DNA of 64,000 nucleotides. It comes from Hyphochytrium catenoides (Eukaryota; Protista; Hyphochytriomycota). The position numbers and the translations under genes are program-made. Shown here piece after piece: positions 1 to 26,756 of the stretch (position 1 is its first letter; every line of letters starts with the position of its first letter). The notes beneath the pieces were generated by a model. That model was not told the DNA's origin. It was given only the letters and a program-made list of their open reading frames with translations, and ran no database searches. Location: positions 41,010 through 105,009 of the forward strand of contig FLMG01001584.1 of NCBI GenBank assembly GCA_900088475.1, read 5' to 3'.

Positions 1-381
1 TACCTGGCCCTTCTCTGCTATCGACTCTTGCCACGCCGCCTATTAACCAACAAAACATCAGTTCCACTCCAGAGACAGCGGAAATTTGAGCGAGGAGCCC
101 ACCTTCGCCTGCTCGAAGGCATACGCCTGGTCGGCATCCCATTCTCGTACCCTAACCTCTTCTCGTAGCTCCTGGCCGCTCTTGCCTTTGCCCTCTAGAA
201 ACGTTTCACCAACCACTTTCTTACTCTCTCCCTTCTCCTCCTTGCCTTGTCCACTGCTGCCATCTTGAGCTTCTCCGCAGGACGGGCAAAATTTTGCTGC
301 TTTTCTGAGAAGAATATACCCGCAGTAGTTGCATGAGGTTCGCTCACTCTCCGCGGCCCCAAGTAGCGTGAGTTTTAACAT
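1..381 (-). CDS. Zinc-ribbon-containing protein, 5' exons only (gene runs off the left edge)
   Basis: The ORF from 381 contains CNYC...KFCPSCG, a zinc-ribbon pattern. A GT donor lies near 103 (GCGAAG|GTGGGC). A further micro-exon at ~5-39 (AAWQESIAEKGQ) is flanked by AG and GT. Confidence 0.55.
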
Positions 382-3360: not shown

Positions 3361-6300
3361 TTACTCTGTTGAAGAGGTTAAGGATAGAGGGCACACAGCC
3401 GCTCTTTCCTTAGCGGCTTCCTCTGTTCTGTCTGCAGCCTCACAATTATCGATGCTCTCGCAGTCATTTACAGAGAGTGAGATTGTTCCATGTGATAAGC
3501 TCTTTTGATCGAGGTATGAGAGGGAAAAGGAGAAGGAGTCCGAGCCTAAGAAGCCAGGAGGTGGGAGATATCGGACTATTCTTCCCCTTTTGCCCATCAG
3601 GAGATGTTGTCTTGGCTTTTCGCCTTCGATCCCCGTCATAAAGTTGGGCTCCAGCTTCACACAACGATTCATAATGGACAAGATTAGGGGTAAGTTCTGG
3701 TTAGAAAAACGTCAAATCAGAGTGACGTGAAGTATTGTCCATTGTAAAGCATCGCAACGACAGAAACGATGAAAACCGTGTGTAAAAGCGTGACACCGAC
3801 GGATTCGTTGGCTACAGAACCTTACCGTGCTCGGCACCAGGTCCGCCGTATACCGCCCTAGAAATCTATCGAAGCCTAGCATCGGAGATAGCTGACGACG
3901 ACGGATGGCAGAGAAGCAGGTGATGGAGATCGGAATTAGAGGGCAGATGAAAGACTATATGTTGAGGGATTGCGGTGGTCTAGAAGGAAAATCGGTAGGA
4001 CACAGACAAGCAAGAGACTAGATACTTGTCTCAGAACATTGCCCTTTATGAAACGTAACCCTCTATTGGAGGAAATGAGAGGCTTGTAAGGATCTAAGAG
4101 CGACAGTCGCGTAGCGCAGTCGCCCTTAAAAGGAAGACAAGAGTTCCAAAAACGCAACAAATTTATGCGCCAAACTCCTTTTATCATGCGGGAGAGCGAG
4201 GATGGGCTAGCCATTACCTTCGTTCCCGCGATCACTGGGTGATCAGCACTGCACAAGTCCGTCCCTCTAGCGTCGTTAGCTTCTCCTACATTCAGGTACA
4301 GAGCGCCATGTAGAGGTAATGAGTTGATCTCGGCTCTAATATCCATATAGTGTTCATGCTTGTTGCCTACAGCCCAGATGAAGGTTTGCCAAAACGATAT
4401 TAGAGACAAGCAAACAAAATGAGACCCCTCTCATCCGGCAAAATGGAGTCCCATAAAATAGTCGAAATGGATGGGATTTAGCTATATGGTACTTAGAGAC
4501 CTGCCGGATCCGTGATAATGAGGACATATTCGGCCAGGGCTCCTTTGTGAGCAACACTATTCCGGCTCGACCGGTCCAATGCAGAAGGCGATTGTGGGGA
4601 GAGTGACATTGGATCGCCCTTTTTTCCCCGATCCGCTATCCTCAAGGTCCATTGGCCTGAGCCTTTCAAGCCTCCAAAGGCCTCCGCTAACATTTCTCGA
4701 GAGTCGTATGGAAGGGCGCCTGGATTGGAACGGCTTGCAATGGGACTGCCGCCCTGTAAAAGGGCAGAAAGGCAGGCAAGGAACAGAGTTATCTTTAAAG
4801 CTGCACTGCCATAGTTGGTAGTGGCATATAAAAACAAGAAAAAACGGACAATCCTCAGGCATGAATAGCACCAACCTCGTACACAGTCGCCGTGCGACAT
4901 ACCTCGTAATCAGCAAGGGGCCTATGTCGGAGCTCAAAGACCTCAACCTCCGCAAGTGAAAGTACCACTGGCCTTTCAGACCCCCCTCCCATTTTCTGGA
5001 GTCGAATGTACCTACAAAACGTCTCCACTGGGAGGATCATCGTGTTTTCTCGTCCTGGCTCAGAGAGCCGCCAAAACCATACTGGCATAAGTACAGAGAA
5101 AGAGTTAAAGGTCGAGAAAGTTGACCTAGCGGAACTACTTGCTATTACTCGGTATATACGCATACCCGCTCTGTCTCTTGAAGCTTCTATCCCAGTTAGG
5201 TTTTGGCCGTCAGCAGTTTCATTGAAGGCCATGACCCAAATGGTTGACGAATCATTATCCCTTGCCTCATATGGAGCGGTAGTGCTCAAACTGACATCAA
5301 TTTGAACCTATTCAGGGTAACATAAAGTTTGGACCCGATGATAAGCTCAAGACTGATAAAGTAATAGTGCTTTGACATAGGCAAGGAGCATTTTCCGATA
5401 AGACTAGCTAGAGCTTGGAACGGTGCAAGTTACCTCGGATGCCAGAGGTTGTAGATCATTGGAGTGTAGAGCAATAATGGGTGGGCTGTCGGGCCCAATA
5501 AATGATACAGTCCATTCATAAGCTGCACGAAAGAAGAACATGGAAGCCAGTTAACCCAGGTCTATTAGATGATGATCAGAATATATATCCTATGATTGGT
5601 AAATAACGGGAAATGACCTCTCAAAGGGCGGAAGATATGCGCCAAAATCAACAAGGGCAATGCAATGCTTGGGAAGTGACAATATGACAACCACTTAGAC
5701 AAACCAGCTGTAGGAAGTAACGATATCTATTGCATACCTCCCGTGATCATATCAGGCCCTCTGCGAATCACATTTACAGCACGAACCATATCCAGTGCTA
5801 GGAGCTTGGACTGCATAGACTCCCCTCTTCCTAAGCCTGAATCCACCCTCCAGGGGTCTTCGTCTTTCGGACGAGGAAGAACAGAAAGTGGAAAGGCGCA
5901 ATATTTATAGAGTGAGTGAGGAAACCTAACGGACATCTTTATATCAACGAGCATAAGGGAGATATGCCAGAGGGATTCTGGCGTGACTCGCTGCTTGAGT
6001 GCCGGCAAATAGCGTTCAGCATGAACGTGGATGAAGAAATGCACTGGCAACAGTTATGCTACTTTTGAAAAAAGGTCATCCAGATGCAAAGCGGAGATAG
6101 GAATCACAACTAGACTAAGTATGCTCTAGGGTTCCCTCACCTGCTGTTTGTGCTACAGCGTTGAAGCTGATTGGTCCTGTGACCTCAATTACTCCTCCCT
6201 TCACGCATTGTAGGCTGAACGTCCCACTGACCGTAGAAGGCGAAGAGATACGGATCACAGAGCTTTCCCTTTGATAAGACTCTTCTTCTTCCAGCCAAAC

Positions 6301-9300
6301 CTTGATTATTGCCCGCACAAGCATCAGGTAGGTGATCAGAGAAGCTTACTTCCTTACTCAGCACTGAATCTTGCAGTTGTTGATGGAAGCCCAGTGCAAG
6401 GGTAGAAAGGCAGTATACAAGGCATACAGTGTTACGATTCCTACATACCTTTATCGTCCCAACTCTTGTTGTCTCTCCAAGGTCAACTTCCCACCATGGG
6501 TCCACATCATTAAGTGCCGTCCGAGTCACCGAACCCTTTATGATATGGAATTTAGTCGTTAGGGACTATAATATTCTCTGAGAACGCAGGGGTCCCTCTT
6601 CTGTCTGTTGGCTGTCTAGGATCTTGATTCTCGCAAACATTTAGGGGTGAACTCGGGCTTACCTGAAGAAAAAAACCGCTTCGGTCTCCATCAATTGCTC
6701 TATTTGCGTCGGCTCCAAAGCCAAGGGAGGACTGGTAAGCTCCTCCTCGCCTAGCTATATTAACTCCTGGAAAGTCTTTGAAAGAGTAATCCCAGCCTTG
6801 GCCAGCGATGACACCTGACACCAGGCGGGACGGGCCAAGACTGCATATTGGGGGCCACAGCACGATATGGAAAGGGAGGAGTTGTCACCATCACCATGAA
6901 ACTCTGACCAGAGAAATGGAGAAATACTACTACGGGATCTGCTGAGCCGGTGATAAGGAATGTTAAGGGACAGAGGGAGCATACAACCCCATTCGATACG
7001 CAGAACAATGAACGGTCTAGTCCCTTAAGTGGAAGGAGTAACAAATTCGCAGAAGAATCCGCAGCACTACCTCGTTAGCCCATTGGGCTCCCCAAACATC
7101 CGCTGTCTTCCTTCCTGGTCATAAAGAACAGCCTCTCTCGCTTCATGGGAAAGAGCGAAAGAGAGGTTCCCAGCTTCCTCATGATAAAGTCCTCGAATCA
7201 GAACCTCCAGGTCAGCCACCATGTTCAGCCTACGGTTGAATGATGATGGTGATGAAGAGAACTGAAATGACGATATGACGCTTGACGACGAGGTTGTAGA
7301 CGGTAGAGTCAGGATCGCGTCAACTCCTGGGAAGGAATGTTGCTGGTACTTTCTCTTTATGCTTCCTCCGTTTAAAGCCAAAGAGGTTGGCGAGAAGTAA
7401 TTGATATCTGTCGCAAAAGAGGTCAGTTAGTACAAGCCGAGAGGGAGGAAGAACCATCAGAAGCGCTAGAGATTTTCCCAAGCGTGAAAGCCGTAGTGCT
7501 AGCTTTAACAGTTCTCACCGCCATAGGTTAAGATTTTCTCACCATCAACTTCGTCGGCGTGAGTAACGCTGTAGCGAAAGTAGACTCTTTGCCCGACTGT
7601 TCTCCAATAAGAGGCCTCAGTGGGCTGACCATCTCGGCGCGTCAAGAGGGTAAAAGTGGGAGACCCGGTAACAACAACCTCATGAGAGAACTCGACAGCC
7701 AGCTCGACGAGCTCCCCAGAGACATAGGTCCCATCCTGCACTGTTGGATAGAAGGTCGAGACAAAGGGTGCAGAGCTATCCAGCTTTATCGCCCGATACG
7801 AGGAGAGACAGCCTTTGTCCCCTCGATAAAGCGGGGAGGACGGAGCTGGTAATGTGATATTCTACGAAGATATGACGGAACGAGCAGCGAGAGTTAGGAA
7901 GCAGATTAGAAGTATACTATGAGGACAAGCTAATCCTTAAACATGCAGACGAATTTTGATGGGAGCTGTAAATGGGGCGTAAGCACTACTCACTGCCAGA
8001 GTATTTGGAAGAGTGGAGACTGCATATATTTTCCCATCGTTCAGGACTAGAGCGCTGCCTGCCATACATCTCGTTCCTGGCACCTCCCATGGCTTGCAAG
8101 ACCTTACGTAGTCCAGTCGTGAGGTGGAGTCCTCTACATTCGTTAGAGCAAGAGTCAATATTTCAATGGTCGTCTATCTAAACCACTTATTCCCACCTCT
8201 TTGGACTGTTAGCTCAAATCGAAGAATATTAGTTCCAGACCCGCTGACATAAATGGCCGGACGCGGAGCGGGTTGGGTATTCATCCATAACGCTGGCGGA
8301 TCAGGCCCCGACATTTGCAGAAGTACTGGAGAGTCAAATGTTATCTGCAGAGGTATCATTTGGCCCCAACCATATATCCCGCTAGGGAGGGGGGACGATA
8401 CAGAGGTAACTGACGGCGGCAATGTGCTAATTTTGATCCGTATCCGGGTCAAGCTGCCCATTGTATCCCCCGCGGGGAGGCGTAGGTCAACTAAATAGCC
8501 CAAGGCTTTCGTCCGAATCTCCCAAGGCACCACTTCTGCTAGTCTTCCACCCTCTACGGCCGGTTCAGCTTCAGGGATACTATAAATCAACGACCTTTGG
8601 TCCAGAACATCTAAAGGATTGGCCGCGTCGTTCTCTTGGACAATGTATTCGAACATCAGAGTTGCTGTGTTACTGCCGCCGACGTACGTTGCCTTCACTG
8701 GAGTCAAGTGCTGCGTCGGCCCAGACATTCCGGTGGAATCTCCAGCTAAGCAGCCAATGAGGTAAGGAGGGGCTTGAGTCGCATAGTACGCATAGCTTCG
8801 TCTTTCGTCTGTGTTCCCTTCAAAGGTGCCGTCACTAGATCTTTCTTCTTCCCGTCCATTACAATCGTCCAGTTGCGCAGCTGTGCGGTTGTTGTAGACT
8901 TTGGGCTGATAATATATCGGAAATCCATCCATAGCATATCCAATAAGAAGCCTGTCCTGCCCTTGGGAAGAAGATGAGCCATACGAGAGCGTGGCCAAGA
9001 GGCATGAAGAAAGCCTAGTGTAGTGATACCTTACAATGGAGAATGGAGGAGTTACTTGTTACTGCAACGTTTACATAGCGGTTGTCTCAACTATCTTTGC
9101 AATGTCAAAAACAGTAGGTAAAAACAACCAAACTTACATTCCGTTTGCATCCGGCGCCCCAGCGCAGCTATCCACGCTCAGGTATCCAGGGCCATTTGTG
9201 CTTGTAACATCATTATTGAACTCGTCCCGGTAGAACCTGATCGGCACTCCATCTAATCCAATACCTAGTGAAAAACGTTTAGGATTGCTCTTAAAAGCAG

Positions 9301-12300
9301 GTGAGACAGCTACCAGCTATACAAGAACTATTCACCAAAAAGGAACCAGAAAGCAGAACAAATTGACGATTTGGCCCCTGATAGATCGTCAGGACAAGTA
9401 GAATGGAGTGAGATCACTTCCATCGTGTTCAAAAATCGTGGTGAAGGACGGCGTGCTCAAGTACACAGCTCGAAAACAAAGGAGCAACCTGAAAGTTCTC
9501 GCTCCTGCAGTGGGCGTTGGTAAGGTGCCTTCCTTGGATATCTTGGAAATGAGAAGGTCCGATTGGCACTAACGACCTGCCACGGATTGTCTGGGCGGCC
9601 ATCTTCATCTCTATCATTGTAGTCCGGAAAGAGAGTCCCTGACATCAAGTCACAGCTACAGTCGCTCCTCACTTCAACTGTGGGATGCGATGAGTTTGAG
9701 ATCACCACATCATTGACTCCACCCCTACCAACAATCCACCCTATGGAGGAATCTATCACTTGAGTGCCTTCTTGCGCTGCAAAGAATTATAGGTCAGGTC
9801 TACAGGTAAATGCAAAGTTACAAGACGGATAAATTTCAAAGCAGACGCTCACCGAGTGGTCTCTGGACATTGAGGGCCAGGTCTGGCTTGCCGGCAACAA
9901 TAACAGGTTCGGTGAATGTCACAGAAATGGGAACTATCTGGTCTCTTCCGTACGTGCCCGGAGGAAGGGACGATGAGACAGAGAGTATAGAGGCAGCACT
10001 CCCTGCTATAGATATGCTGCCTCTGCCTCCCCCGCCTTCCAACGTAAAGTATAACGTAGAACCTGGCAAGGTAAGATCCGCTGGTTGTCCGGACACCTCC
10101 GCCCACCGCACAATATCCCCCACAAGTGCGTCTTTGGAATACGCAGCCAGGGATGAGCAAAAATCCTTCGAGGAGACGCTGAATGCAAATGACAAAGTGT
10201 CGGTCATGTTGCCTCCTGCGTGGGATGTAGCGTCAGACGGACCACAAAGTGCTAAGAGCTGAGGAGAGGTACTTTAGGTCCACAAGGGCATTGAAATTGC
10301 TTCTGTACAGAGTTAAAAGCTAAAACAACTCTGGAGAGATTAGGTGAAAACCTTGACTCGGGGTACACACGACATACCAGTAAAGATGGCCTTAGACTGA
10401 ATGGTGTTAGGAGAGCAAAGACGAAGGGTAGGAAACCCGGATCGGATCTATGGAAGAGATGGAACCATCGTTAGCCCTACAGTGCGAGACATTGGAACCA
10501 AATCAAGAGACCAAACACATGGGCGTAGGATGAGAAAGCGGAGCAGCAGAAACAACTAGGAGGGTGCAATTTTGTCAAATCCGGGTTGGCCAGTAGGTGA
10601 GGCTGAACTTGGTAAACACTGACCATGACCGTCGCGCTAAAGCGGACATGAAGAGTGAGAGCGGACCCTTTCGAGTATAATCCCGGAGTCTCTTTGGTGA
10701 AGAGCGAAAGGACCTTCGGTGGACCGGAGCTCACAGAGAGTCGTGACTTTGATAAACTACCAGGGCCACCTATGGTCATGGGTTAATCAATCCACATGAC
10801 TTATATAGACTAGAGGCATGTTTAGCATTCCGCATCTTAATCAAATTTCATACCGGGTGCAGGTAGGGTTAAATCTGCTGGTTGAATAGAATTTGTGGAC
10901 TTCCTTAAAACCACGCCTGGGAATGAAGGGAATGACAGAGGTAGCGTTACAGGAGGGTGAGACCAACCTCTATGGACCAGTGACCCATTTAAACCTAGCT
11001 TTTCCTTGGTTCGAACCGATAGCGGCTCGAGAACAAGGCACTCCTCACCTGACAAGGACGAACTAGCAAGGTAGTCCAATAAAGCGATATTGTCTCCGGG
11101 CTGCACCAGATACTTAAGAACTATCCGAGACCCCTCCGTGCGTACATAGGATGCGGATCGTCCCACATTCAAAGCTAGGTCCAGACTCCCGTAGGGCATT
11201 TCCACCTCGGCAGAGAACTGTAGCGATAGAAAGATTGACTCCCCTGGACCACTTGAGATACCCGTAGTGTTTGAAGACACAGAAAGGATGCTTGGTGGGG
11301 ACGAGTCAACAATAATTTGGCGTACGTAGGAAAGACTGCCTGCAGTACCGTACAGTGATATGTGGCAATAGCAGTGGAATGTAGTGTCAGCGCTTTCAGC
11401 TTCCGAGAATGGAGGGAGATGAGGTGAAGCAATCTAGCAGGCAACGCACATAGATTGCGATAGATGGCAATAAGATCTGGTTTTACCTTTGCCTCTTGGA
11501 GGAGGGAGCCGCGTCGGCATGTAAAACCCATCCTTCGTTAGGAGGTGCTCAAATGGAAGTGACAAAGCTGAGGAAGAGGAATAGTCCAGTGGAGAAGCGC
11601 TATGCCCCAGGCTGCAGTACAAATGACGATTAGCCAGCCTCACTGCGATAAATGGATAAAAAGATTCTCTAATACGCCCTATCCTCCCGTTTATTCTGGA
11701 ATACTGCCGCAGTGCGCAAATTACCCGTTGCCCTTCAACTCCAACAGCCAGACTTACCTGACAGTGTACACAAATGTGACGATATGTGTGCCGTTACCTC
11801 CTGCATACGGTGCTGGGCTGACATCTGCTAATCCTGGTCCTGTTTGCAGTAATAAGGACGGAGGAGAACGCAGCACGACTGGACTTGAAAAGACGACCAA
11901 GACTTCTACTTCCTCTCCTACTCCAATCCTTCCTCCATCATGATTAGTGAAAGTATAGAGTACTCTTTCTCCATCCGTTCGGAGTGCGATTCGGCCTCCC
12001 GAAGCTACTACCCCCCTTCGCTTTAAAGAAGGTGAAGGTGCAGATGGCTTAGGCAGAGACAGATTAGCATCAATCGTGGGAGATTGAGATGCTAACCGAA
12101 TCCATGCCTGGCAAAGAGAAGATTGGCAGATCTGACTATCCTCGTCCACGTCTTCTTCGCTAAACCACCTCTTGTTCCGCACTAGAAGGGAAGATGTCGT
12201 CTCATAATCTAGCAGCCCTGTAATGGGTCCTCTGTCTTTCGTACTATCGCCTTCCCGGACGGTGTACTCAAAAACAAGGCGATTAGTTCCATTCCCTTCC

Positions 12301-15300
12301 TTGAAACCTGCGAAAGCCGCTTGGAGTTTCAGGCTAGGGAACCGAGAGAAAGAGAGGACAGAACTGAATCCACTATACGAAGTACTGATGCCCAGATAGA
12401 GTGCGGGAAGGCCCTTGACGACTACCGGTCTAGAAAACACCACTTGGAGTTGGAGTTTTTCTCCGGTAGAGTATACCCCCGAGGGTGATAGAGATGAGAC
12501 AGCGAGCACCGACGGGGGTGTACTGTCCAACTTCAGCTGCGCACTGTCGCTCAAAGAGTTTGCGCTGCCGGGAACTACCGTCGTGGCGACAAATAAGGGG
12601 TATTCGCATGACAATAGGGAAAAAGGGTACTGTTAGGGACACAACAGACGCAAAAGTCAAGCTTGCGCAAGTATAAAGAGCAATACTACAGACCAAGGCA
12701 GGACCAACCATGCGAGCTGCTCCCCGGGGAAGCGACGAGAGGCAGACGAAGCACCAAAAGGATTGACATAGGAGGACCCTAAGACAGCATCAGCAACTTC
12801 TTTGCCAAACGTCTCACCTGGACATCTTAGAATGGCATCCAATACTGGGACTTCAGTCTTCTTCGTGATCCTTCCTCCGTGAAGCCTGAGGGGTTCGGTG
12901 TACCTCTGAGACGAGGTAGACCTGTCATCTACGACATCGAGCCGGCCTGTTGCGTCACGGAAAGAGACGATGTATCTGCAAGAACGAGGTGATGATGGCT
13001 GAGAACAAGGATATCGCGAGAACCAAAGACTTTTTATCACGGTAAGCGGGGACCACAATAGAGGCAAGCAGGGCTCACAAAAGCTATAGAGAGACAGAAC
13101 TAAGGTGCGGCAAAGAAGGGACCCTACAGTGGATATTTAAGGACAATCCACATAACAAAAGGGACTTGTATAATATTACATACAAAACGGGGACAGGCTT
13201 CAGAGTTACAGAGTATCAAGACCACGTACCGAAACCTAATAGTATCAGTTCCATTTCCTTCAAAATAGTCCGCATAACCGACTCTTTCTTCGGCGACAGA
13301 AAGGGCGAGGGATGGGAGTCCATAGATAAGCACAGGAGCCGAGAAAACCACCCCAAGAACTAGACGATCGCCAGCAGAAAAGGTTCCGGAGGTATTGAAG
13401 CTCATTAGGCTTAGCACCTAGCATATAAGCAAAGAATGCATGGAAAGATTATAACGATTTGCTCCTCGCCAGTGTTCCAAAACCTGCTGTGACTCCCAGT
13501 CCCCAGTCCCTGGCCGATGCATGTTCTCTTTCTTAGCCTATGTCGTCATTGGTGCTCTTACCTCTGGCTGTGTGGTTTGAAGCTCTATGTGTCTTGTCCC
13601 TCCAAGGGAATTTGCTGATAGTCCACAAGTCAGATAACTCTCAGACACCTTCAACTAAAGCTGTGGCTTCAATCGCCCCAGAATTCTCAAAATACGAGAG
13701 TGATAGCCAAACGAATGATAGACAATGTAAGGTCTAAGATAGCTATCATGATAGAAATACCTGAAAGCGGAGGCGGCAGATTAAGGTCCGCATCAGTGAC
13801 CGGCAAGGCCGATAATCGGCGGATCATTGCGCCATTTAGCGACAGAGACAGACTGTCTTTGTACTCCAACACGGGTAGCTGATCCGAGGTGCGGACTGCA
13901 TAGCGAAACAAAAGAACCGCCGTGCCATTTCCACCTACATAATAAGCGCGCCGGCCGCTATCTCCTTTCTCCTTAGGGTAAATCGTGATGACGCTTCCAG
14001 TAAGCGCAACAAATGGAATCCCTGCACCAAGAGGGGGCGGCACGTGTTAATTCAAGGCAGGGCACTATGGACACGACGTGCCGCCAGCTTTTGGGGGAGG
14101 GGTGTCTCCTTAGGGAAAAAGACGCTTCACAAAGGTAGCGTATGAGCACTGAGCAAATATGATTGTGCGGATGGAGGAGTCATGTATAGCCAAGAGGTTG
14201 AGGTGTCAAGAATCAAGAACACTCATAGCAATCGATGGGAGGATAAGAGAAAATAAGTTACCTTGGCCCAGCACTACGACGGGCATAGAAAATGTGATGG
14301 TGATATGGATTACATCGCCATAGCCATAAAGGCCATCAGGGTTGAGGGCGGATACCCGGACAACAGCCGGAGGGTTCGTGTCGACCACGACGAGGGACTG
14401 GGAGAGGGATCGCGGATCTGACAGAGAGGGCGAAGGCAAAGGAAGCGTGGCCAGTCGTGTGCCGAGGTCATCCCATAGTTCAACTCCTTGTAGCTCCAGA
14501 GCACTCGTAGATGCAACATCTAATGACGATGCGACTGTAGTATCTCCTATTTGCAAAAGAACGACGAGGCAAGCTTAAGGACAAGCTCCACAGCAGCTAT
14601 GTGTTTCTTAAGGGAGAACTGTTAGCAAACAGAACTGGATACAGAAGAAGTATACATGGAGTAGAAATGATAAGTAGTGGGAGAGTATGGCGTCAGATGG
14701 CGTAAAATAGCTGAGAGATATCTCCTACCTGGCTGTACCACGTATTTGAATTCGAGAGTATCAACGGCGACAGGAGGTACGCTCCGTAGAAGGGCCAATC
14801 GACCATTAGATAGTTGTAGACGGGGCCATAGAAATGAGAGAGGAGTCCATACCCTCTGCGCTGAATCGAAAAACTGATGCAAAGAGAGCGCAGGGTTAGT
14901 CGGCCTATTTGGGTCGAAGGACCACCGTTTAATCCTTGATTATGTCTTTGCACACTCTTTGACTTTATGGCTGCTCACTACTCTCAGCTCTCGCTTGTGT
15001 CATAGCCCATTCTTTGAAGCAATTCGCCGCTACTAGCAGTAGAAGGGTAACGAATGGCAGATGACATTTCCCTCAATTCATCACCCTTTTCGTACCTTGA
15101 TTTGAATCATTCTAGTTCCATGGGGCCCCTCCTCCTCCCACACTGCCAAGACTGCATCTCCGCTCGATCCCAAGAAAGGACAAGCAACTGACCTTTCTGG
15201 ATCGACATTCAATGGTCTTCCAATCGTCCAGAAATCGTCTTCTCCCCCTTCTTCCATATCCAGCTCCTGATCCCAGGATAGGCTACCATCATTCCACCTT

Positions 15301-18300
15301 GCTACCCGCAGTCTAGGACTCCCCCATGGAACAGAGCTATCCAGATAGGAAATATATAGAGAAGATCTAAACTCAACTAGTGACGGGGAGAAAAAGCGTG
15401 AATCAAACACCGTCGAGAAAGTAGCACTTGTCGTTGAAGATTCATGTCCAAACTGAGGCGTATTGACGGCTAGGGAAGACAGCAAGAGCCATTCCTTGTC
15501 CCCTTCGTTTCTTGATAGAGACGCAGCCCATATCAGAGAAGATCCATTTACTTCCTGTTCCTTCCAAGATAGCAGAAGTCGGGCGTCGTCTCTCCCTTGC
15601 CTGGCTGTGTATAGACGAGGATGGGCAGAATACGATGAAGCTGACATTGCCAGCCCTACGGAAAAAGAAAGAGAACTCTTTCGGTAAGGGACATGAAGAG
15701 ACAAAGTAAAGCAGTGGCCAGAAGAAGGAGGGCATTACGGCGGTGGCAAAGACAGTAATGGCGAAAAGCAAATGACCTAAGCTCCACAGCCAGCCTGTGG
15801 CTCTGATACTTCCCACTTACCGCCCTCGTCTCTTAGTCCTCTATCCATCCTTCTCCAATAGGGAAGAAGAGAGCCCTCTTCATGTTCTGAAACTCGTATA
15901 ATGACCCTAGGACGACTTGACGAAGAAGGAGATGTCGTGCTGGGAGGGAGTAGCTGAGACCATGCTAAATAAACTCTATTTCTGTAGATAGAAAGTGACG
16001 GAGAGAGAGCAGAAAGGCGATCTTCTCCTTGCAATCCCGCACTTCCTTCACCGCCGTCTATGAGCTTCCAGGGGAACTGTATGGGTCTAAAGGATTTTAC
16101 TCTAACCTACGGATGAGAGCGGCATTAAAAGAGGATCAAGCCAGTTGCAGGAAGAGAGCTCTTTAATTTGTAGCTTCTTAACCACGTAAGGTAAAATTCA
16201 ATTCCTTAGAAGCAAGCTTGAAGGAACTATGTGCGACGCCGGTATGTACATTACATGGGTTAACATTAGATGGGTTCACCACAAAGGAGAGAAGGCCAGA
16301 AGAGGACGTGAGAAGGCCAGAAGAGGACGTTAATCTAGAAAAAAATAGGTCCACAGAATGTAGCCCGAGTAAAAGGGCCACAGGTCCACAGAATGTAGCC
16401 CGAGTAAAAGTCTCTTACCCTAGAAACTCCAAGGGGATTTCGTTCTTCCCAAGCGCAGTATATTATTCCGTTATGCGAGGCTAAAGTGGGTGACGCTGCT
16501 GCTCGGGACGAATAAACATTCAATCCGGTCACGCCTGCTCCGTCTAGGGACTGCCAGCTTCCTGCCAGGAATTCAGGTTAACTTAACAGAAGCTCGAAGA
16601 TTTAGCATTACTAGCTGTCAACAAGAAATAAAAAGAGCATACCAGGGGTAACACAAAAATGCAAACGCCAAGCTCACCAAGCACTAGATTATAGAGAGAC
16701 GCTCTGACTTGCGGCACGCCATCTGCACCAGGCTCAACCCAAGCAACAATTGGGTTGTCCTCATGCAAGGCAATTGTCACGTCACTTGCTGTTCTCGCTG
16801 CGTCTCTATTAACTCTATCCGCAAGTCCTCCACCCACGAAGGAGATTGACGTCGAGGTAAGAAGCGCCGCTTGAACGTGACTAATTCCTGGAGTGGAAGT
16901 TTCTTCTGTCCAGACTAAAAAGACACTAGACGGCGACAGGGAAGTTAGAGCTACGAAAGACGGATGCTGTCCATCTTTGTCCTTTTCTCTGTTAACGCCT
17001 ACGACAACCTTCACCTTCCGTCGGAACTTGGCGGCAATGTTTACTACTTCCCCCGCTCCATAGGTTCCTGGGGCCAAGTTTGTAACCCAGACTTTCTCGG
17101 TCACAATAGGCGCTAGATGTATGGAAAAGACGAATGCAAAGGAACAGCCGTTAAGTGCAGCCCGGCTGATTTATTTTACGGTCCGCTTTTGCCCCCAACT
17201 TTCACTCTTTCTGTGATCAAAGGATGACAACTCCCTTACCTTGAGTATCAATACTCCAGGAGACTTGGTTCGACAAACACTTCCCTACCGTGAATGGAAG
17301 CGTCATATCCGCATCACCCTTGGGAAGAGACGAGGAATCCAATATAGAAACAATACCGTCTCCCGTGGGAAGAGAGGAAATAAGAGCACCATTGAGCGAG
17401 AGGGCAGAGGGAGAGGAGAACTCAAGTTCAGCAACATTATCTCCTTCTCTGATCGTGTACCAAAATGTTAGTAGCTCATCAGTACTTTCTCCTTCTTGAA
17501 ATATTGCATCTCCATTAGTGTTCATTTTGATGGTCGGTGTGCCTCCTTCGACCGCCACTTTCTTACTCATCTGTAGGGAGAAGCTTAAAACGCCTGGAGG
17601 AGAAGTGAGCGAAGCCAAGTAGAAGCCTTTGCCGTACACTCCTGCAGGTGCTGACGTAAGCACGGCAATCACTTTTGGAGGCCGGGAGTCTATTGTAATA
17701 GCACTGCTATCCTCCAGTCTCTGCAACGAGATGGGAAGGGGGAGAGAAACATCTGCTTCTGTTTTAGGGTTCATAGAGAGGCGAAGAATTGCTCCCTCAT
17801 TGACATCCAAGGAGGCACCTGGAGGACAAGAAAGAGTCCAACGCTGTTCATCGGACGGAACAACGAAGCGAAAGTTGACACTGCGGCCCTCCTGAACCCT
17901 TCTTACTGATCCAAACAGGGGATCACAGTCTTCCTCGTCGGGAGGGTTGAAAAAGGGAGAGACAGGTTGTAGAGCATGTAGAGGGAGATGCGATGGTGAT
18001 GGCGCAAACGTGACGGTGTAGCGAAAGCCACCTACAGTTGGAGAAGAAGTCACGGTAACAGTCCCGCCGAGGGATGCAATGCTCGCAAGACGAGAGAGCT
18101 CCTCCAATAGAGCTCCATCTTCTCCCGAAGCTTTGTCATATTTTATACATCGGGTAACTTCATTTCCATATTGGAGACGATACTCTCCAGATACGGGAGT
18201 TGAAGGTAAGTAAAGAGTGAAGGGCGAGGGAGATAAATTGGGGCCAATTTCTATCACTTGCACTAAGCCAGCGAGAGAATACTCGGCTTCATGGCCAAAG

Positions 18301-21300
18301 GCAAGCGGAAGAAGAGGAGAGCCCCGAACCAGTACCGGGGCGGAGAACTCCGCGACAATGTCCACAATCTCTCCCGGTATTACCTCGGGAGAATCGGGGT
18401 GACGACTGTAGATCCTCTGAATGTACGGCGGCGTTGTGTCGATCTTAAGCCTGTGAGAGACCGAGAGGGATTCAGGACTTCCTGGTGTTGGAAGGAGTAG
18501 AAGAGCTCTTTGTCCCACCCATCCGCCCCTCGAGAGAGAGGAATGAGAAGCGGACAATATACTGCCGTATGGCGTTGCAAGAGAGAGTGAAGGATTTCCA
18601 ATCTCCACTGGGTCTGCCATGTCACCTTCCCTGACAGTGTATGCGAAGGTGAGAGCCTGAGTGTTGTTCCCTTCTGTATAAGTAGCGTTACCAACATTTA
18701 GAATTAGTATTGGCCTTCGCCCTACCACCCTTACTTCGCTCGTCCAATGGACGGTGATTAAAAGGCGATCCCCGGCTGCGTAGGTGCCATCTGCTAAGGA
18801 AGTGGAGAGATGTGACACTAGAGGAGGAGTAGGGCTGTGAACATTGGCGGGAGTAAGAGCAGGTAAAGAAGTGTCACTACCTGAGGAAGGAAGGCTAAGA
18901 AGAGCGTGTTGAGGGGATAGAGTTGATGCGCGCCTGACATCACCGGCCAGCGAAGAGGAAGCGGGATAGGTAAGAAGCTGTGTCGAGTCCAACGGTTGTA
19001 CCTCGTATATGAACGAAAGGGTTTCGCCTTGAACCCATTCGGGTAGATAAACACTATTTACCGTCAAAGCGGGGCCATCCAGACAAGATGGACAATCTAA
19101 AGGGAATGATGAGCACTCTGGACCCGGAGAGAGAGCAAAAACTCGACCTTCATCAGGATCTCGTCCCTCCACGACGAGTGATGACGAACTTGACGAAAAC
19201 GTTATGTAGTACCGACGTGTGAAAGGCAAAAAAGTTGAGTCCACGCTTACGCTCACGTCCATGTCGGCATCCAGCAACTCCTGTAGAATAGATTCCAACG
19301 ACACGGAGGCAGGCAGAGAGGGCAAAGAGGAAGCAGGAACATTCCAGTCTACGCAAGAAGAAAACCCCTGGTCCCCATACAGGAGCTGGAAACTCCCTGT
19401 TTCTGCCCTGACATCCACTGTTTGGATGGTGGCGACCGGTGGGGCACAGCTGTCGTCCCACTCCGGGATAAGCGGAGCAAGAGGAGGAGATACGAAAAGA
19501 ATAGTAGTCCTTAAACCGTTCCCATAGGTCTGGATATTCACCTCCTTTATTCCTATGGTTCGGAGTTCTGAGATGGCTTCCAAACGCTCTCTCAAAGAGG
19601 AAGGCGATCGGCTCTCCGCTAATCTGTAATCTATGCATGCGGAGAGACTGGACGAGTACCTTAGCCGGTATTCCCCATATATTAGTCGCCCAGGTCCTTT
19701 TACGCCAAAGTCGATTATCTGCAAAGTGCTACCTCGAGTGTAGACCGCTGTACCTAACGAAAGGGGAAGAGTCGGAGAGGAACTGGCAGGGACAGTCACA
19801 GAAGATGAGAATTTTACAGCTATCTCCAGAATCCCTGGCTGCGGCTCTTTCTGTTCTTTCTCTCCCTTGTCTCTGTTCACCAGGATTGTCCACCAACAGT
19901 TGGGGGGAGCACAAGAATCTGAGGGGTTAGAACATCCCTCGTAGTCAACTTGCAGTGCCAATATAGATTGAGAAGGGGAAGCAAAAGTAATATGGTAGCG
20001 GTGAGTTGTCACCCATTGAGAGGAGAAGCTCTCTTTGCTGACAGAGACTGATAGAGCCAGGGAAGAACTGGCTTCCAATGACGTCTTCACGGAAGCTGCT
20101 GAGTCGTCCCAAGCAAGGCATTCCGTGGGTATTCCCCCATAGAGTAAACGGAAGGTGCTTCCGGCTAATGTCGCAGATGGACTGGAAGACAAGTCTACAG
20201 TTTGAATCATGTCCTTTTCTGAGTAGAACGGACGAGGGTTAAGGATGGAAACTGCTACTATAGATGGTGGAGATGTCTCGACGACAATCTTGTGAGAATA
20301 AGAGAGGCTCCCCGCTCTGCCAGGATTGGGAAGATGCAGCGAGGCAGAACGAGAAGGGAGGAAAGCTCCTGCTCTAATACAGTCAGAAGTAAGAGAGCTC
20401 CACTGGGAAATGCTAGAGGCTATTGCGGAAACCGCTCTGTAGACCGCGGCTCTTGCAACTTTTCTGGAGGTGTCAGGCTGGTATTCCTCGGACCAAAGGA
20501 TGTACGTGCGGTCACCGTCCTCGAAACCTTCGGAGCTAACAAGCGAAGACGAGCTTGCACCCATGTGTGGGAAGAGGTTGAGTCCTCCTTCTTCACCTCC
20601 GGGAAAGACCACAGAGCTAGAGTCCACGAAGCGAGATATTGTTGTCGCTTCTCCAAGGTCGAATTCTCTGACCCTTACCCTCATTGGTATGCTGGGGTCA
20701 GAGGCTTCCTCCCAACTTAAAAGTAAACTCGTATCGCCCTTTCCTACGACCAGAGAGGGTGCTCGAGCAACTCCATTCCTGTCCCAGTTTAGGCCCTCCC
20801 CCATGTCTAGAGAAGACAAGCTGAAGTCCCTTTTATTGTAAGCTGATAGGTGAATGACGGAAGAGCCTAATCTTTCTTCTACCCAGGCCAAGAAGAGTAA
20901 CTCTGCCGTCTGCGCCATGGTGGGCTCCATGGCAGAGTGAGAATTATCATGGTTGAAGCTTTCTCCGTCTGGAAGGACAGGGAGCCATCTGTTTGGACCG
21001 GAATGGTAGGCATATACCCTTACCTGTTTAGCCCCGGGGATCCCTCCAATCTCTTCTTCCCAGGCACAAAGGAGATTTCCTTCTTCATCTCTAATAGAGA
21101 GGACCGGATTTCGCGCGTTTGCGGATGGGTCATAATTTAATGGTGCCCCGAAATCCCTGTGGAGAAACCTCCAGGTATCGCTGTGAACGGTCCAAGCAGC
21201 TACACGGATCTGCTCGACTCCGGCGCCCGACTCTTCTGTCCAAGTCACATACATTACTCCGTCCAAAGCTACAGCTCTGGGACTCTGAGCACTTCTTAGT

Positions 21301-24300
21301 GGATTTAGATTCACCCCTCTTCCTCCCACCCCTCCATCTATCGAAGTCCAAGAGGGTTCGTTGTTATCATTGTTATATTGTGCCACTCGAATCTGCCAGA
21401 CACTATCAATGGGGTTCCATTCGTGCCAGATAGCCATCAAAGTCGGGGTCGTAGGAGAGGATACAGGAGAAACAGACACCAATCGCAGTCCTCCGGCAGG
21501 TTGAGAGCTGTCAATAGCAAGAGAAGATGAACCTGTCACATCACTCCAGCTTGGACCCAGGAGAGATGGATCGAGTTGGACTGAAACACGCAGCAGAGAT
21601 TGACCTCCAGCCACTTCTACTCTTCCAGCATATAGCAACCCCATATGCTCGACACCTGATACCGCCACTACGGAGAGAGACGACGGCGTGAGGAGGGGCC
21701 CCAGATAGTCCAGACAGACGAGAGAAAAATGCCCTGCATAATCCAATGTTGGGGAAGAGTCTCCTTCCTGCACCTCATAAAGAAAGCGGAGTTCTTTGGG
21801 TGACATTTGACGATATAACGGCAGAACCGTGTCATATTCTTTGCCGGTTCTTATGGCTAAAGACACCTGACCGTGACTGCTGGGAGTGATAGACACAGGA
21901 GACGAGAAAAATACGGATATCGGAATGATCTCTCCCACTCCATAGGTTCCACTCGGTATGCTGCTATTCACCGATGATATAACTGTGACGGCGTTTGCAA
22001 TGCTTATTCCGAACGTCGGGAAGAGACGCAGCGGGGTCCCTGACAGACTGCGGAGGAGTGTCCGAGCTTCAGTGGTAGTAGACGCCTGCACTATTGATGC
22101 GCCTAGTGAAATGGAAGTGAAGAGAATGGTTTTTCAGGTAAGCTAAGCTGCTTCCAATGCGATCGAAGGCCAGGCTGAAGCTTTGGATAACAACAAACGT
22201 TAACCTCAGGTGAAATACGAGAGGACTAAGTGCACAACGTGTTAGCTAACTTACCTGAGGGTAACTCCAGAGCAGTGTCGCCTTCAACATCCACTACTGG
22301 TGCACTGTCTCCCAGATTCACCATGTACTCAAATATGCAAGTCCGGCCCCCTTCCATTCGAGAAAATGGTGCCCTTCCGATCCGTCCTCCCAGCCTGAGA
22401 GACATCACAGGAGCGCCTATGGTTCCAAGAAGCGTACGTCAATAGGTATTACTATCGAGAGAAGGCATCCTGCTGAAAGCTGGGCGACAGAAATGAAATC
22501 TACATTGGGAAATATGGGCCAGCACAGGACTTGACATCTCAAAGGGACAAGGTCGTGGGAGAAGGGTAGAGGTTCCAATATAGGAGAGAAAGGAACTTTG
22601 GGTTTTAAACCTGTGACATCAACGTCGGCCTGGAACACCACAGCTATCGGGATTATTTGCCCTGCAGTGTAAATCCCGTCCGGGACCAATGGGTAGAGCT
22701 CCTCCACAGCGTTTACGGTGGGGCTTAGAGTGATTGCGGACAAAGATGCTGCAGGCAAGAGCAGCTCCGCGTGGGTCATTGGAGAACCAGACGCCTTCTT
22801 GATGTATGTATCCTCAATCGAGCCGTAGAGAACTGTTAGCCCTCGAGCACCCTCTACGTCGAGTCCCACAACCGAGTCATATTCTGTGACCTGAAACCGA
22901 AAAAGGAGCGTATCCCCTTTATCAGCTCCAGCTCCGTCACTAGTAGATAGCGACGACGATGCAAAGTCACTGAGCAAAAAAAATGGTGCGTAGGCATCCT
23001 CCCGAGGAAGGTCCAGGCGTATGGCTGGCGTTCCGCCTACTACCACTTCTGATGAGAAGCGGACGCGGATCACTATGTCGTCTCCAACGGTGTAAATGCC
23101 AGGCCGTGTGACAAAGGAGACTGAGAGGACAGAAGGTGGTGTGGTATCCAGCGATATTAAGGAGGGAGAACTAAGAAGCCCTCCAACATCAGCACCCATC
23201 GGCAGCGTGAGAAGAGCGCTTGTCGTTGGTTGGTCTGACTTCCTCTTAACCTCAAAGTTACCTGAAATAAAAGCTGCTCTGTTCAGCACATCCACGGCTC
23301 CTATAGTATCCCCTGGCATCACTCTAAAACGAAATCGAAGAGTGGACGAATCACTACTGGCAACATAATCTGCCCTTCTTGACCCTGGACCATACAAGGA
23401 GAGTGCTGGAGAACCTGAGTACTCGTTCACAGCCACAATAGTCCTGCCGCTGTACACCTCAAGCGTGTGGAGAATGTCTCCTTCTACCCTGTCCACAGTG
23501 AGAAGCTGGCCATCCAAAGTAAATTGCATTCCTTGAGCGTTATCAGTCGTGAGCCCATGGGAGGAGAGCGAAGGAGACCCGGAAGGGAGTGTAATGATCG
23601 TGCTTCCACTGGCGGCTGTGACAACGGAAGTTCCGGGTGGCAAGATTGAGGCGGTTCCTGTTCGGACTAGGATGAAAGGGACAGATCCTAAGCCAGGAAC
23701 AACGACGACAGGTTCAGAAAAAGTAACAGCTAGCTCCACTATGTCACCAGCGTAGTATGGAAGGAATGAGACAGAGGTAGACGCAGAGGAGGGCTTCACA
23801 CTTGTGATGTGAGGGGGTTGTGTGTTTAGACTGAGTTGGTGGTTAAAGGAAAGACTGCCTGTTGAGTTAAGGGAAGAAAGAAATTGGAACGGTCAGTAGA
23901 AGTATCCGGCCGGTGTCTCTTTCCCTCCTCACCCCTCTTATGCAAGGACCATTAACCACACCCATTTGCTTGCCATCTTTGACTTCCAGGGCTGCCCGTC
24001 CTTGTTAAACTGTATATCCTTCTTCACATCAAGTTCTTCGTTCTCTATCTTACTCGAACTCTAGTTGATCATAAACCTATAGAACCCTTCCGACCCTTTA
24101 TTTCAGATCATTCCTCTGTTCCCATTCTTTTCCACAGGGCATCGTTAACTGGCTCTGTTCCTCACTCTTTCTGTAACGACCCCAATGTCTACTCGTCGTC
24201 CCATGACCTCTATATGAAGCCACAGCGGACTCTATTGAAGCAGAGTTCTCTATTTATATACCTGGCGATCCTGGCGTGGGAAGGAGTAGATTGGCTGGTG

Positions 24301-26756
24301 TCGATGGAGACGTAGAAGAACGTAGAATTGTGCTAACAGACCCCAGATTAAGAGCATTTTCATCCATGTAAGAGAGACGAAAGGTTGCATCACCCTCCTT
24401 CACTGTGTAGAGGAAGTAGATGGAAGAGCCTTCTGTTTTTACATACAATGCCTTTCGCCTAAACACAATTTAATGAGCAGGCGGGATGACAGCTAAGACC
24501 TAGCTAAACAAAGCACCCCCCTCACAAAAGTAAGCCAAGGGAGAAACCAGTCCGTTAAAGAGCTGGTGACTAATTGCACAGGACCGTGGAGGAAATTAAC
24601 AAGGGAAATCCCATACCAGCCCCCATTCTCCCCTACCAACCTGAAGGCCGTGATGTTCGTTACAGCTCCCCCACCGACGTCCATTAATATAGCTGGATAG
24701 CAGGAAAAGCTCACGGGACAACCTGCGGAGAGAGTGTGAGGGTCGACAACCAGGGTAAAGCAGCCAGGTGGCGAAAACTGGAAAGCCAAAAGCCAATGCT
24801 AGAGGAACGAAGAAAGAGTTAGCAGTCAAACGAACGGAACAGAGAGTGCCTAGAAAGCCACAAGGGTAAATGAGTAATGCATCATAAGGAAGTAGGACTT
24901 GAGGCCCAGAGTAAGCTGTCAGCACCAGGTCCTGGGTTGACTGTAACTGGATGGTTGAATGTCACAATGACATGGATTCTCTCTCCAGCTCCTATAACCC
25001 CTTCCACGGGCTGCCCACTCTCAGACTCAACTCGCACGTCCAAAATTTGAGGAGGTGATGTGTCAATGACAATGTTGCTAGTTATACTAAGTGAAGAGTA
25101 CGTCCCACGCCTGACGTCACCTGCCAGCATAAACACCGTTAGATGGCGAGAAAGAGTAGTGTGTTAGATATGCGCTAGATAAACGGTTGGCACATTGAAA
25201 CCGGTGGTCTGCCCCCAACCTCAGAGGTAGCTGCAGAATATTGAGCTCAGAACCGCCAAGAGTAGCTGCTAAAAAGATGCTATGGCAGTGGCCTGCTTAT
25301 ACCTGGGTGTCCTGGAATAGGAAGCTTGGGGTTGATCGGCGTGTTAGTAACGGCAGCAAGGATCTGATCATCGTGCTGGAAGAGGGAGTAGGGTCCAAGG
25401 TAATCTAGCTCAGGTGAGTTATCACCGGGCTGGACCGTGTAGCGAAAGGTCAGAGCGTCCGTCGGAGGGGAAGGTGGAAGCAATAGAGTGGCTCTAGCAT
25501 TTTGCTTTCTGAAACCTTGGACGACCTCAGTCACTACGATTGAAGGCGGGGTCTCTCCTCTTATCGTCAATTTGGAACCATCTCCTTTCCTATTGTCGGG
25601 GTCGATGACAAGGAGTGGGAGATCTCCATTTTGCTTGCTCATTGCGATGGAGGATAGAAAAGTGATTTGAACTTCCCCGCCCTGAAGAGAGCAGACTTGT
25701 GGTCCTGGATTAACTTCCACTGCAACCGCTTCGAGATTGGGCAGAGTCTCTAGGTACGTCTGGAGATCCGAGGCGGTAGAGGAGAAGGGTATGTTGCTTA
25801 TGGTCTTTCAGCAACGGCCAAAGAGGGATATGTATGTGTATGTATGTAGAGAGAGAAAGAGCAGGCTTAGTAGATAGCTATCAGGCTTATTCAAAAGAGC
25901 AATACTGAACAAGTTGCTCGTAAGAGGTCACCCGAAGGGATGGCAGAGAGACTAGCAAACCAAAGCGTATTTGCATGCTCATCCATGTAACAAAAACTTA
26001 AGGCCATAATCTTTTACCTGTCCATCGAACGAAATACCAAAATGGCCTCCATCAGCGATGCAGCTGAACGACTGGACCTCGTGGACCGTGCAAAGTGTGG
26101 ACGAACAGCCCGTTCGAAGCTCCAGCTCGGCTGGGTGAAGAGGGTCCAGACCTAGAACAAAAGTATCATGGTATTGAAGAGGTTTCGTTAGGTTGAGAGT
26201 CCATCAGAAGATGCCCTCACCCTTTTGCTGAAATGGAGCAACCTTGTTTGAGGACACATGTCCGTCACAGGGTAAAAGTCGCCATAGCCTCAAACGACCG
26301 GGGGGACGGAAGGTTCAGGGAAGAAAGCAGAAGACAAACAGAACCCAGAACCACAGAAGGATGCCAAAGGAGCATCTTATTGAGAAAGAACTTACGAATA
26401 ACATTGACGGGTGAGCTGAGTTTGACGTAGATATCAATGACTTGCCCAGCACCGAAGGTGCCTTCTGAAGGTGAAGAAGTCACAGATACTATCTTCGGAG
26501 GGCCAGAGCCATTCAGTATAATCTTTCGTTCTGGCACCTCCACTAAGAGATTGAGCTCGCCCCCCTCAGGGATAGGAAGTACCGCTGGCAATGAGATATC
26601 AAGAGGTGCACTGCGAGTAGTTTCTAAACGAATATCAGGAGCTATGGGTACAACCAACTCCCCACAAACCAGCAACGCAAAGGTAGCGACTAGAGCCAAC
26701 GTTAAGGACAATGTAGTCCACTTAGCCGCGGGATGGTTTCCGGCAGCTAACCCCAT
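3361..26756 (-). CDS. Giant multi-exon secreted/surface protein (roughly 5,000-6,000 aa): ~20 Ig-like GxYxxG repeats with inserted beta-propeller, xVQ and YHYH domains, then P-domain, fucolectin-like and C-terminal Ig-like domains
   Basis: N-terminus has a hydrophobic signal (MGLAAG...LSLTLALVATFALLVCG). Co-oriented ORF fragments joined by GT-AG introns repeat the pattern PPxVxxVxSxxxxGxYxxGxxIxIxVxFSxPVxVxGxPxL...LxFxYxVxxGD...LDY...AxLxLP from 26.5 kb down to 7.3 kb. One exon is 4863 bp (17240-22102). The exact 3' end (~3260-3361) is uncertain, and not every junction was traced. Confidence 0.8.
4940..6760 (-). other. Fucolectin/F5-8 type C (FTP)-like domain of the giant protein, interrupted by an insert
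   Basis: NIARRGGAYQSSLGFGADANRAIDG, DPWWEVDLG...GTIKV and CRYIRLQK...LSLAEVEVF match the F-type lectin fold signature. Confidence 0.75.
8730..9780 (-). other. YHYH-family domain inserted in Ig-like repeat ~18 of the giant protein
   Basis: Spliced sequence reads IGLDGVPI...VDSCAGAPDANGMYHYT...LLIGYAMDGFPIY...LDDCNG...YAYYATQAPPYLIGC. Confidence 0.8.
15090..16970 (-). other. Beta-propeller-like insert 2 of the giant protein
   Basis: Repeated ~55-aa units such as VNRDAARTASDV...IVAWVE...QVRA, LNVYSSRAAASPTL...YCAWEE and LNVDPERSVACPFL...LAVWEEE. Confidence 0.65.
16289..16410. repeat. Two adjacent short direct duplications in an intron (2 x 21 bp; 2 x 29 bp with 35-bp period)
   Basis: gagaaggccagaagaggacgt at 16289 and 16310; aggtccacagaatgtagcccgagtaaaag at 16347 and 16382. 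Confidence 0.9.
20400..21690 (-). other. Beta-propeller-like insert 1 (about 7 blades) of the giant protein
   Basis: Units of the form LNx(5-6)AxxPxx...hhhxWxE...hRV: AIWHEW, VTWTEE, CAWEEE, LAWVEE, LSWEE, ILWSEE. Confidence 0.7.

Follow-up and report, generated by a model that had tools for sequence, protein, structure and literature searches.

Discontinuous immunoglobulin (Ig)-like domains have been described in the RTX adhesins of bacteria, namely MpIBP, FrhA of Vibrio cholerae and AhLap of Aeromonas hydrophila, in which an Ig-like domain of the extender rod is interrupted in sequence and another domain buds out of it, its two ends lying adjacent and its body held off the rod axis, with multiple nesting also possible (PMC12077191, PMC10865825). 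In the described cases the split usually falls after the first strand, and the split domains belong to a short region for ligand binding close to one end of the protein. Here we analyse a 64,000-nucleotide stretch of the Hyphochytrium catenoides genome (contig FLMG01001584.1, positions 41,010 to 105,009, assembly GCA_900088475.1; hereafter the window), which carries a gene whose backbone consists of approximately 20 Ig-like repeats of roughly 125 amino acids each. Taken together, the evidence given below suggests that the gene probably encodes a giant secreted fibre- or adhesin-like protein of about 5000 amino acids, in which a rod of these repeats includes at least seven split domains with modules hung at its side.

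The window protein is similar to the RTX adhesins in that its Ig-like domains are discontinuous in sequence and associated with a budding domain, but it differs from them in several respects. Its gene is eukaryotic, contains introns and begins with a signal-like peptide; its splits affect at least seven of the approximately 20 repeats, are distributed along the rod and use six different loops; one repeat, R7, holds three inserts at two loops; and its cargo comprises a module designated xVQ, the YHYH domain and a propeller-like domain. Furthermore, the RTX nonapeptide GGxGxDxUx is absent from the reading frames of the gene and from three orthologs described below (P0005, P0006 and P0011). By analogy, the protein appears to resemble the RTX ligand-binding region in its manner of working, yet it lacks defining features of the RTX family and is not a member of it. 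A β-sandwich interrupted by an inserted β-I or vWFA domain is also seen in the integrin β hybrid domain and in pilus adhesins such as RrgA. These are single specialised cases belonging to unrelated folds and families, whereas the window contains a repeated chassis, and no sequence relation or significant fold relation to them was found. The split-domain principle is known from the RTX adhesins, and what is new here is a eukaryotic and more heavily used version of it.

The locus represents one eukaryotic gene of approximately 23.4 kb on the minus strand, broken into multiple exons by introns, rather than a set of bacterial open reading frames. Its extent is based on a collinear tblastn chain of the orthologs P0011 and P0006, which runs from 26732 down to 3427. 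A first-pass annotation, made from the letters of the window alone, had located the nested repeats between 8480 and 26500; the repeats do lie there, but the gene is larger, with its start codon at 26756 and its stop codon at 3361-3363. A refined profile of the Ig-like repeat, with 126 positions and derived from 48 intact repeats, and an xVQ profile of 112 positions were run on the stop-to-stop translations of the window. The match to the Ig profile is broken in two at seven repeats, namely R1, R3, R6, R7, R9, R11 and R18 (Table 1), and in each of these the C-terminal part picks up the profile at most a few positions away from the end of the N-terminal part, which would not be expected of randomly truncated repeats. 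The same broken matches are reproduced with a profile derived exclusively from a bacterial protein (P0002, see below). Both halves keep the near-invariant residues of the intact repeats, with F28, V32 and G36 in the N-terminal half and F186 and Y188 in the C-terminal half, and alignment of intact with split repeats requires a single clean gap, which for the R9 unit separates AxYxSGSG from TxxLxFxY and coincides precisely with the insert.

Table 1. Coordinates in the window of the gene, its split repeats, one intact repeat and associated segments; Ig[a-b] gives positions in the refined Ig profile.
Feature	Position	Strand	Composition and match
Whole gene	3361..26756	minus	Start ATG 26756; stop codon 3361-3363
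Signal-peptide-like N-terminal segment (MGLAAGNHPAAKWTTLSLTLALVATFALLVCGE)	26657..26756	minus	Hydrophobic core after the start codon, judged by eye
R1, split	25301..26492	minus	Ig[1-31] 26492-26400; xVQ 26071-25511 (intron inside); Ig[56-111] 25462-25301
R3, split by ~80-amino-acid insert	23134..23757	minus	Ig[13-54] 23757-23602; Ig[29-126] 23436-23134
R3 insert	23380..23652	minus	~80 amino acids
R6, N-terminal part	21714..21980	minus	Ig[1-84], E 3e-16; positions 1-80 with the bacterial-only profile
R6, propeller-like insert	20391..21713	minus	441 amino acids; alignment with eight ortholog copies
R6, C-terminal part	20265..20390	minus	Ig[85-126], E 5e-5; complements the N-terminal part ending at 84
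R7, three xVQ	18852..20264	minus	Strand A; xVQ 20207-19905; Ig[18-59] 19832-19713; xVQ 19727-19434; xVQ 19427-19185; Ig[56-117] 19028-18852
R8, intact	18426..18818	minus	Ig[1-126], E 3.5e-22
R9, split	17676..18428	minus	Ig N-terminal part 18428-18282 (match Ig[15-49] 18377-18282); xVQ 18266-17886, E 5e-23; Ig[57-126] 17885-17676
R11, split by propeller-like insert over several exons	14368..17080	minus	Ig[7-33] 17080-16997; propeller pieces 17005-15093; Ig[35-70] 14825-14721 (weak); Ig[63-126] 14556-14368
R18, split by YHYH	8420..9988	minus	Ig[1-43] 9988-9860; YHYH exons within 9786-8705; C-terminal part Ig[44-126] 8704-8420 (profile match listed as Ig[44-84] 8704-8582)
C-terminal part of the gene	3361..7240	minus	DPWWEVDLG motif; fucolectin/F5/8-type-C-like

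The longest open stretch of the gene (22133-17220, minus strand) comprises 1638 codons without a stop, and R6, R7, R8, R9 and R10, the last of which is intact like R8, all lie within this single frame. As the frame is uninterrupted, the splits within it cannot be products of splicing or of an erroneous gene model. The earlier proposal that several Ig-like repeats are cut into N- and C-terminal halves by cargo is thus upheld, with every item that it listed recovered on the minus strand at or near the position given for it. The split in R3 was not among these items; its insert is conserved in the alignment of four orthologs and emerges from the loop that also holds the R1 xVQ.

When profile positions are mapped onto the secondary structure of a model of R9, the insertion points fall in six different predicted loops, and none of them lies inside a predicted strand. 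The loop at positions ~10-17, between strands A and B, accommodates the first xVQ of R7, and the loop at ~33, which follows the VxVxG motif, accommodates the second propeller-like insert (in R11). The loop at ~43-45, between PxLxL and AxY, is used by the xVQ of R1, the R3 insert and the YHYH domain of the window, while that at ~52-56, between AxY and LxFxY, contains the xVQ of R9 and the second and third xVQ of R7. The first propeller-like insert (in R6) emerges from the NGG turn at ~85-87, and the loop at ~107-110, before the last strand, harbours both YHYH copies of the oomycete orthologs. This distribution agrees with the first-pass reading of the repeat as a chassis with permissive loops; the accompanying statement that insertions fall near the loop between the PxLxL and the AxY...LxFxY strands is correct for several of them but does not cover the range of six loops used overall.

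The structure of a split repeat was predicted for R9 with AlphaFold2, using an alignment in which R9 was joined by 48 intact repeats and a further 24 split copies. The resulting model has a mean pLDDT (predicted local distance difference test) of 85.8 and a pTM (predicted template-modelling score) of 0.81, with both halves at high confidence. In VIA-align comparisons against the PDB, contiguous Ig-like domains of ~100 residues span the model from 1 to 248, with ~90 residues aligned and Z-scores of 5-6.3; the matches to the R9 halves include SbsC, Cwp6, FdeC, invasin, InvE, filamin and the C-terminal domain of sulfite oxidase, and a fold test of the halves on the Ig-like domains of SbsC, FdeC, invasin, InvE and filamin gave Z-scores of 4.4-6.3. 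A Foldseek search of the AlphaFold DB aligned contiguous "Ig-like domain" and "SbsA Ig-like" clusters of ~120 amino acids to residues 2-247 of the query, with a probability of 1.00 and a template-modelling (TM) score by query of 0.42-0.43, which is near the ceiling, given that a match can involve no more than the ~120 residues that make up both halves. In the same database, the "VCBS protein" D7G8H9 matches R9 over residues 20-234 (E 3.5e-9). Against the PDB, the two-domain R9 model had no significant Foldseek match, with RrgA present as a non-significant one. The xVQ part of the model (54..180) finds other proteins separately, as a domain in its own right. On the question, raised with the first-pass annotation, of whether the halves re-form one β-sandwich, the superposition of both R9 halves on contiguous Ig-like domains suggests that in R9 they do, and the modelled evidence pertains to this one repeat. 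In terms of the model, the superpositions appear to fit a re-formed sandwich rather than two orphan halves, with the R9 halves probably forming one Ig-like sandwich from which xVQ stands apart as a separate domain. The other six split repeats would presumably close in the same way.

The repeat itself has bacterial relatives. A search with the large exon as query recovered a bacterial protein, P0002, with an E-value of 2e-55, and this protein consists of 13 tandem repeats of ~123 amino acids that bear the motif GxYxxGxxIxIxVxFSxPVxVxGxPxLxL...AxYxSGSGTxxLxFxYxVxxGD...AxLxLP...SL...IxID, the portion of which as far as LxFxYxV is common to the window repeats. A profile made from the 13 P0002 repeats alone recovers approximately 20 window repeats (best E 3.9e-14, for Ig 2-122). 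In Pfam the window repeats remain without a match even at an E-value of 10, falling below the gathering scores of Big_5 (PF13205) and Big_12 (PF19078); among the bacterial relatives, the Pfam thresholds are passed by individual repeats only (P0002 with Big_5 at 46.5 bits, P0003 with Big_12 at 37.5 bits). More generally, NCBIfam and Pfam fail to recognise the Ig-like repeat, xVQ and the propeller-like domain. These sequence comparisons indicate that the repeat is a bacterial-type Ig-like unit that is poorly covered by current libraries. Within the sample, split repeats are confined to eukaryotic proteins; no split copies were detected in its bacterial proteins, which have intact repeats only.

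An exhaustive search with R9 (248 amino acids) recovered 93 proteins, at least 15 of which contain the Ig N-terminal part, xVQ and the Ig C-terminal part in one aligned stretch, and an iterated search added 29 whole units of this kind that align end to end. The best matches are giant proteins of Aphanomyces euteiches and A. cochlioides (5081-5089 amino acids, annotated as "YHYH domain-containing protein"), followed by those of Achlya hypogyna (5130 amino acids, "secreted protein") and Lagenidium giganteum (5481 amino acids); others come from Pythium insidiosum, Thraustotheca clavata and metagenomic eukaryotes, and the contig of one metagenomic relative bears a gene for a eukaryote/archaea-type ribosomal protein S4e. 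The giant oomycete proteins are orthologs that share ~27-38% identity and the order of repeats and cargo with the window protein, and the introns of the window are passed over when they are aligned collinearly to it. In four oomycete or oomycete-like orthologs, namely P0005 (from Logan), P0006, P0007 and P0011 (3902-5481 amino acids), intact repeats, split repeats and cargo succeed one another as they do in the window, and the collinear alignment with the window covers 26732 to 3427. In all four, the first repeat is a counterpart of R1 with the arrangement Ig[1-44]-xVQ-Ig[45-126], and the order of pieces in R7 is identical; in the orthologs, R11 takes the form of Ig[1-33], followed by 370-430 amino acids and then Ig[32-126]. 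Given this shared order, the nested architecture is old and conserved, and not a quirk of this genome. We found no paper in the literature on this oomycete protein family.

Two further suggestions of the first-pass annotation can be addressed with these orthologs. Reordering or omission of segments by splicing is made unlikely by the single frame that holds R6 to R10 and by the four orthologs, in which halves and inserts follow one another as in the window. Swapping of cargo among orthologs is mostly not seen, the cargo being conserved for R1 to R11, but the position of YHYH appears to differ: the window has one copy at Ig 43/44 of R18, whereas the oomycete orthologs have two copies at Ig 107/110 (Aphanomyces, Lagenidium and P0005; P0006:3758-4338 and P0011:4063-4702). 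By best similarity to Aphanomyces, the YHYH-bearing repeat of the orthologs corresponds to the uninterrupted R19 of the window, with the orthology of the C-terminal repeats being noisy. Tentatively, the YHYH cargo might have moved between loops. Separately, the metagenomic protein P0008 (6984 amino acids) has, in the region P0008:2366-4304, an Ig N-terminal part (18-50) and C-terminal part (45-108) that are 1842 amino acids apart, with xVQ directly after the former; this gap may represent an extreme nested insertion or contain undetected repeats.

The xVQ module, which occurs once in R1, three times in R7 and once in R9, matched no Pfam family. In an alignment of 36 sequences (A4), C40, C114 and Q3, the glutamine of the xVQ motif on the first strand, are invariant, and the invariance of the two cysteines suggests that they probably form a disulfide. 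Comparison of the xVQ profile with PDB sequences recovered three tandem repeats of the mycobacteriophage Bxb1 gp23 "tail tip cage" (9d93 chain Ma) with an E-value of 2.6e-9, and the modelled xVQ (54..180) superposes on gp23 residues 390-520 with a Z-score of 8.6 and 22% identity in VIA-align, indicating that the two are related in sequence and in modelled fold. Folds resembling xVQ were also observed among the capsid entries of Bxb1 and Patience. In gp23, a phage structural protein, the module is in tandem, whereas in the window it is nested in an Ig-like domain. Arrays of 35-38 copies of xVQ without the Ig-like repeat are found in giant stramenopile proteins, P0044 (7591 amino acids) and P0056 (7479 amino acids, an MMETSP transcript), and on account of these arrays the module can be considered autonomous and also used as beads on a string. 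Shape and feature searches, which provide leads only, pointed to xVQ-like modules in a "tubular mastigoneme" cluster, in EGF/teneurin-like proteins of oomycetes and other stramenopiles, and in fibrocystin-L/PKHD1L1.

The two large inserts, in R6 and R11, form one homologous group together with eight copies from orthologs, and each comprises seven units of ~60 amino acids with a W-x-E motif, suggesting that they are likely to be seven-bladed propellers. There was no Pfam and no PDB sequence match to this domain, with the propeller profile finding GH43 in the PDB at chance level; an Atlas feature comparison offers as a lead a similarity of 0.88-0.96 to BNR-type/sialidase-like and other clusters. 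An alternative delineation, in which R6 would be complete before the propeller with "LLRVSVQLDPSLL...LAIDSSQP" as its last strand, was rejected, as the alignment with the orthologs shows this segment to be a degenerate first blade. The YHYH domain (Pfam PF14240) scores 35.5 bits in the window open reading frame 8177-8998, above the Pfam gathering score of 25, and up to 104 bits in orthologs. For the ~80-amino-acid insert of R3, the Atlas feature search provided weak leads only, to small domains of phages such as head fibre and E1_FCCH-like ones. The C-terminal region of the orthologs has weak, below-cut-off F5/8-type-C matches, and a similar motif was seen by eye in the window (Table 1). The gene ends in a conserved RxVRYxPxPGFxGxDxFxF segment that is also present in P0011; inspection by eye of the C-terminal sequence of the giant protein revealed no hydrophobic stretch.

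Given the above observations, the favoured reading is a protist protein, related to or encoded by a gene shared with those of oomycetes, that would act as an extracellular fibre or adhesin-like molecule. In each split repeat, the chain would leave the sandwich at a loop, fold an autonomous module whose ends lie close together, and return to complete the same sandwich. The modules, namely xVQ, the seven-bladed propeller-like domain, YHYH and the ~80-amino-acid insert, would hang sideways without lengthening the rod, like the ligand-binding domains of the RTX adhesins. Rod geometry of the giant protein, projection of the inserts as functional heads that bind ligands and a role as adhesin or fibre would all be in keeping with this analogy. 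Several points weigh against it. The model covers one of the seven split repeats (R9), intact repeats formed part of its input alignment and favour closure of the sandwich, and the pairing of the halves was deduced from superpositions and pTM rather than from coordinates; a single-sequence AlphaFold2 run on R8+R9 yielded a pLDDT of 36. The exon structure outside the large exon is putative, being read from the DNA. Finally, xVQ and YHYH are not known to bind ligands, and binding by the propeller-like domain would be putative.

The halves could instead be remnants of truncated repeats that flank in-line domains, like beads on a string, and share no sandwich. The weak matches of some halves (R7 Ig[18-59], E 0.02; R9 Ig[15-49], E 0.0055), together with the modelling of a single split repeat, could be taken in this sense. 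We nevertheless regard such decay as very improbable, given that the end of the N-terminal part coincides with the start of the C-terminal part in every case, that near-invariant residues are retained in both halves, that the sandwich appears to close in the R9 model and that the halves are conserved across distant orthologs. Even less credence, amounting to almost none, is due to an artefact, whether through misassembly, pseudogenisation of the locus or a false gene model fusing unrelated pieces: the assembly is a draft with runs of N elsewhere in the window, and the exons outside the large one are putative, but the gene itself (3361..26756) is free of N runs, includes the open stretch of 1638 codons and is collinear with the 5000-amino-acid proteins of several sequenced oomycetes.

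A more substantial rival accepts the same nesting and assigns it a structural role in a wall, cyst coat or flagellar-hair-like matrix, with the inserts self-associating or cross-linking laterally. Such a role would accord with the xVQ-like modules detected by shape and feature searches in EGF/teneurin-like stramenopile proteins and the tubular mastigoneme cluster, the 35-38-copy xVQ arrays of other giant proteins, the identity of the solved xVQ relative as a structural part of a phage, and the stabilising disulfide suggested by the two invariant cysteines. The below-cut-off F5/8-type-C matches of the orthologs and the by-eye motif of the window point weakly to carbohydrate binding instead, and in the RTX adhesins, the nearest analogue in mechanism, the split domains serve to display domains that bind ligands. 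On this balance we hold a purely structural role to be unlikely, while still deserving of consideration, and favour the adhesin-like fibre with side-hung modules. Going beyond this, it is conceivable, though we would not presume it, that the repeat constitutes a natural eukaryotic loop-display scaffold, in which an Ig-like fold of bacterial derivation takes up whole domains, as large as ~440 amino acids or several in series, at six loops, with the cargo in different loops or repeats in different lineages. Were this true, cargo would have been relocated or inserted independently in the course of evolution, and the outcome would be a branched modular fibre whose heads could be exchanged without altering the rod.

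On the whole, split Ig-like domains, so far described in bacterial RTX adhesins, where they hold ligand-binding domains off the rod axis, are here encountered in a conserved family of apparently secreted oomycete and protist proteins of ~5000 amino acids, and their use is heavier than in the described cases, with seven split repeats, six loops and up to three inserts per repeat. The analysis provides domain boundaries for the expression of the xVQ, propeller-like and YHYH modules and ties xVQ to a solved phage structure. A small β-sandwich that tolerates big insertions at many loops would also be of interest for the engineering of protein scaffolds. Several of the organisms that bear orthologs are plant or animal pathogens, and a surface fibre of this kind would be a reasonable candidate for an attachment factor.

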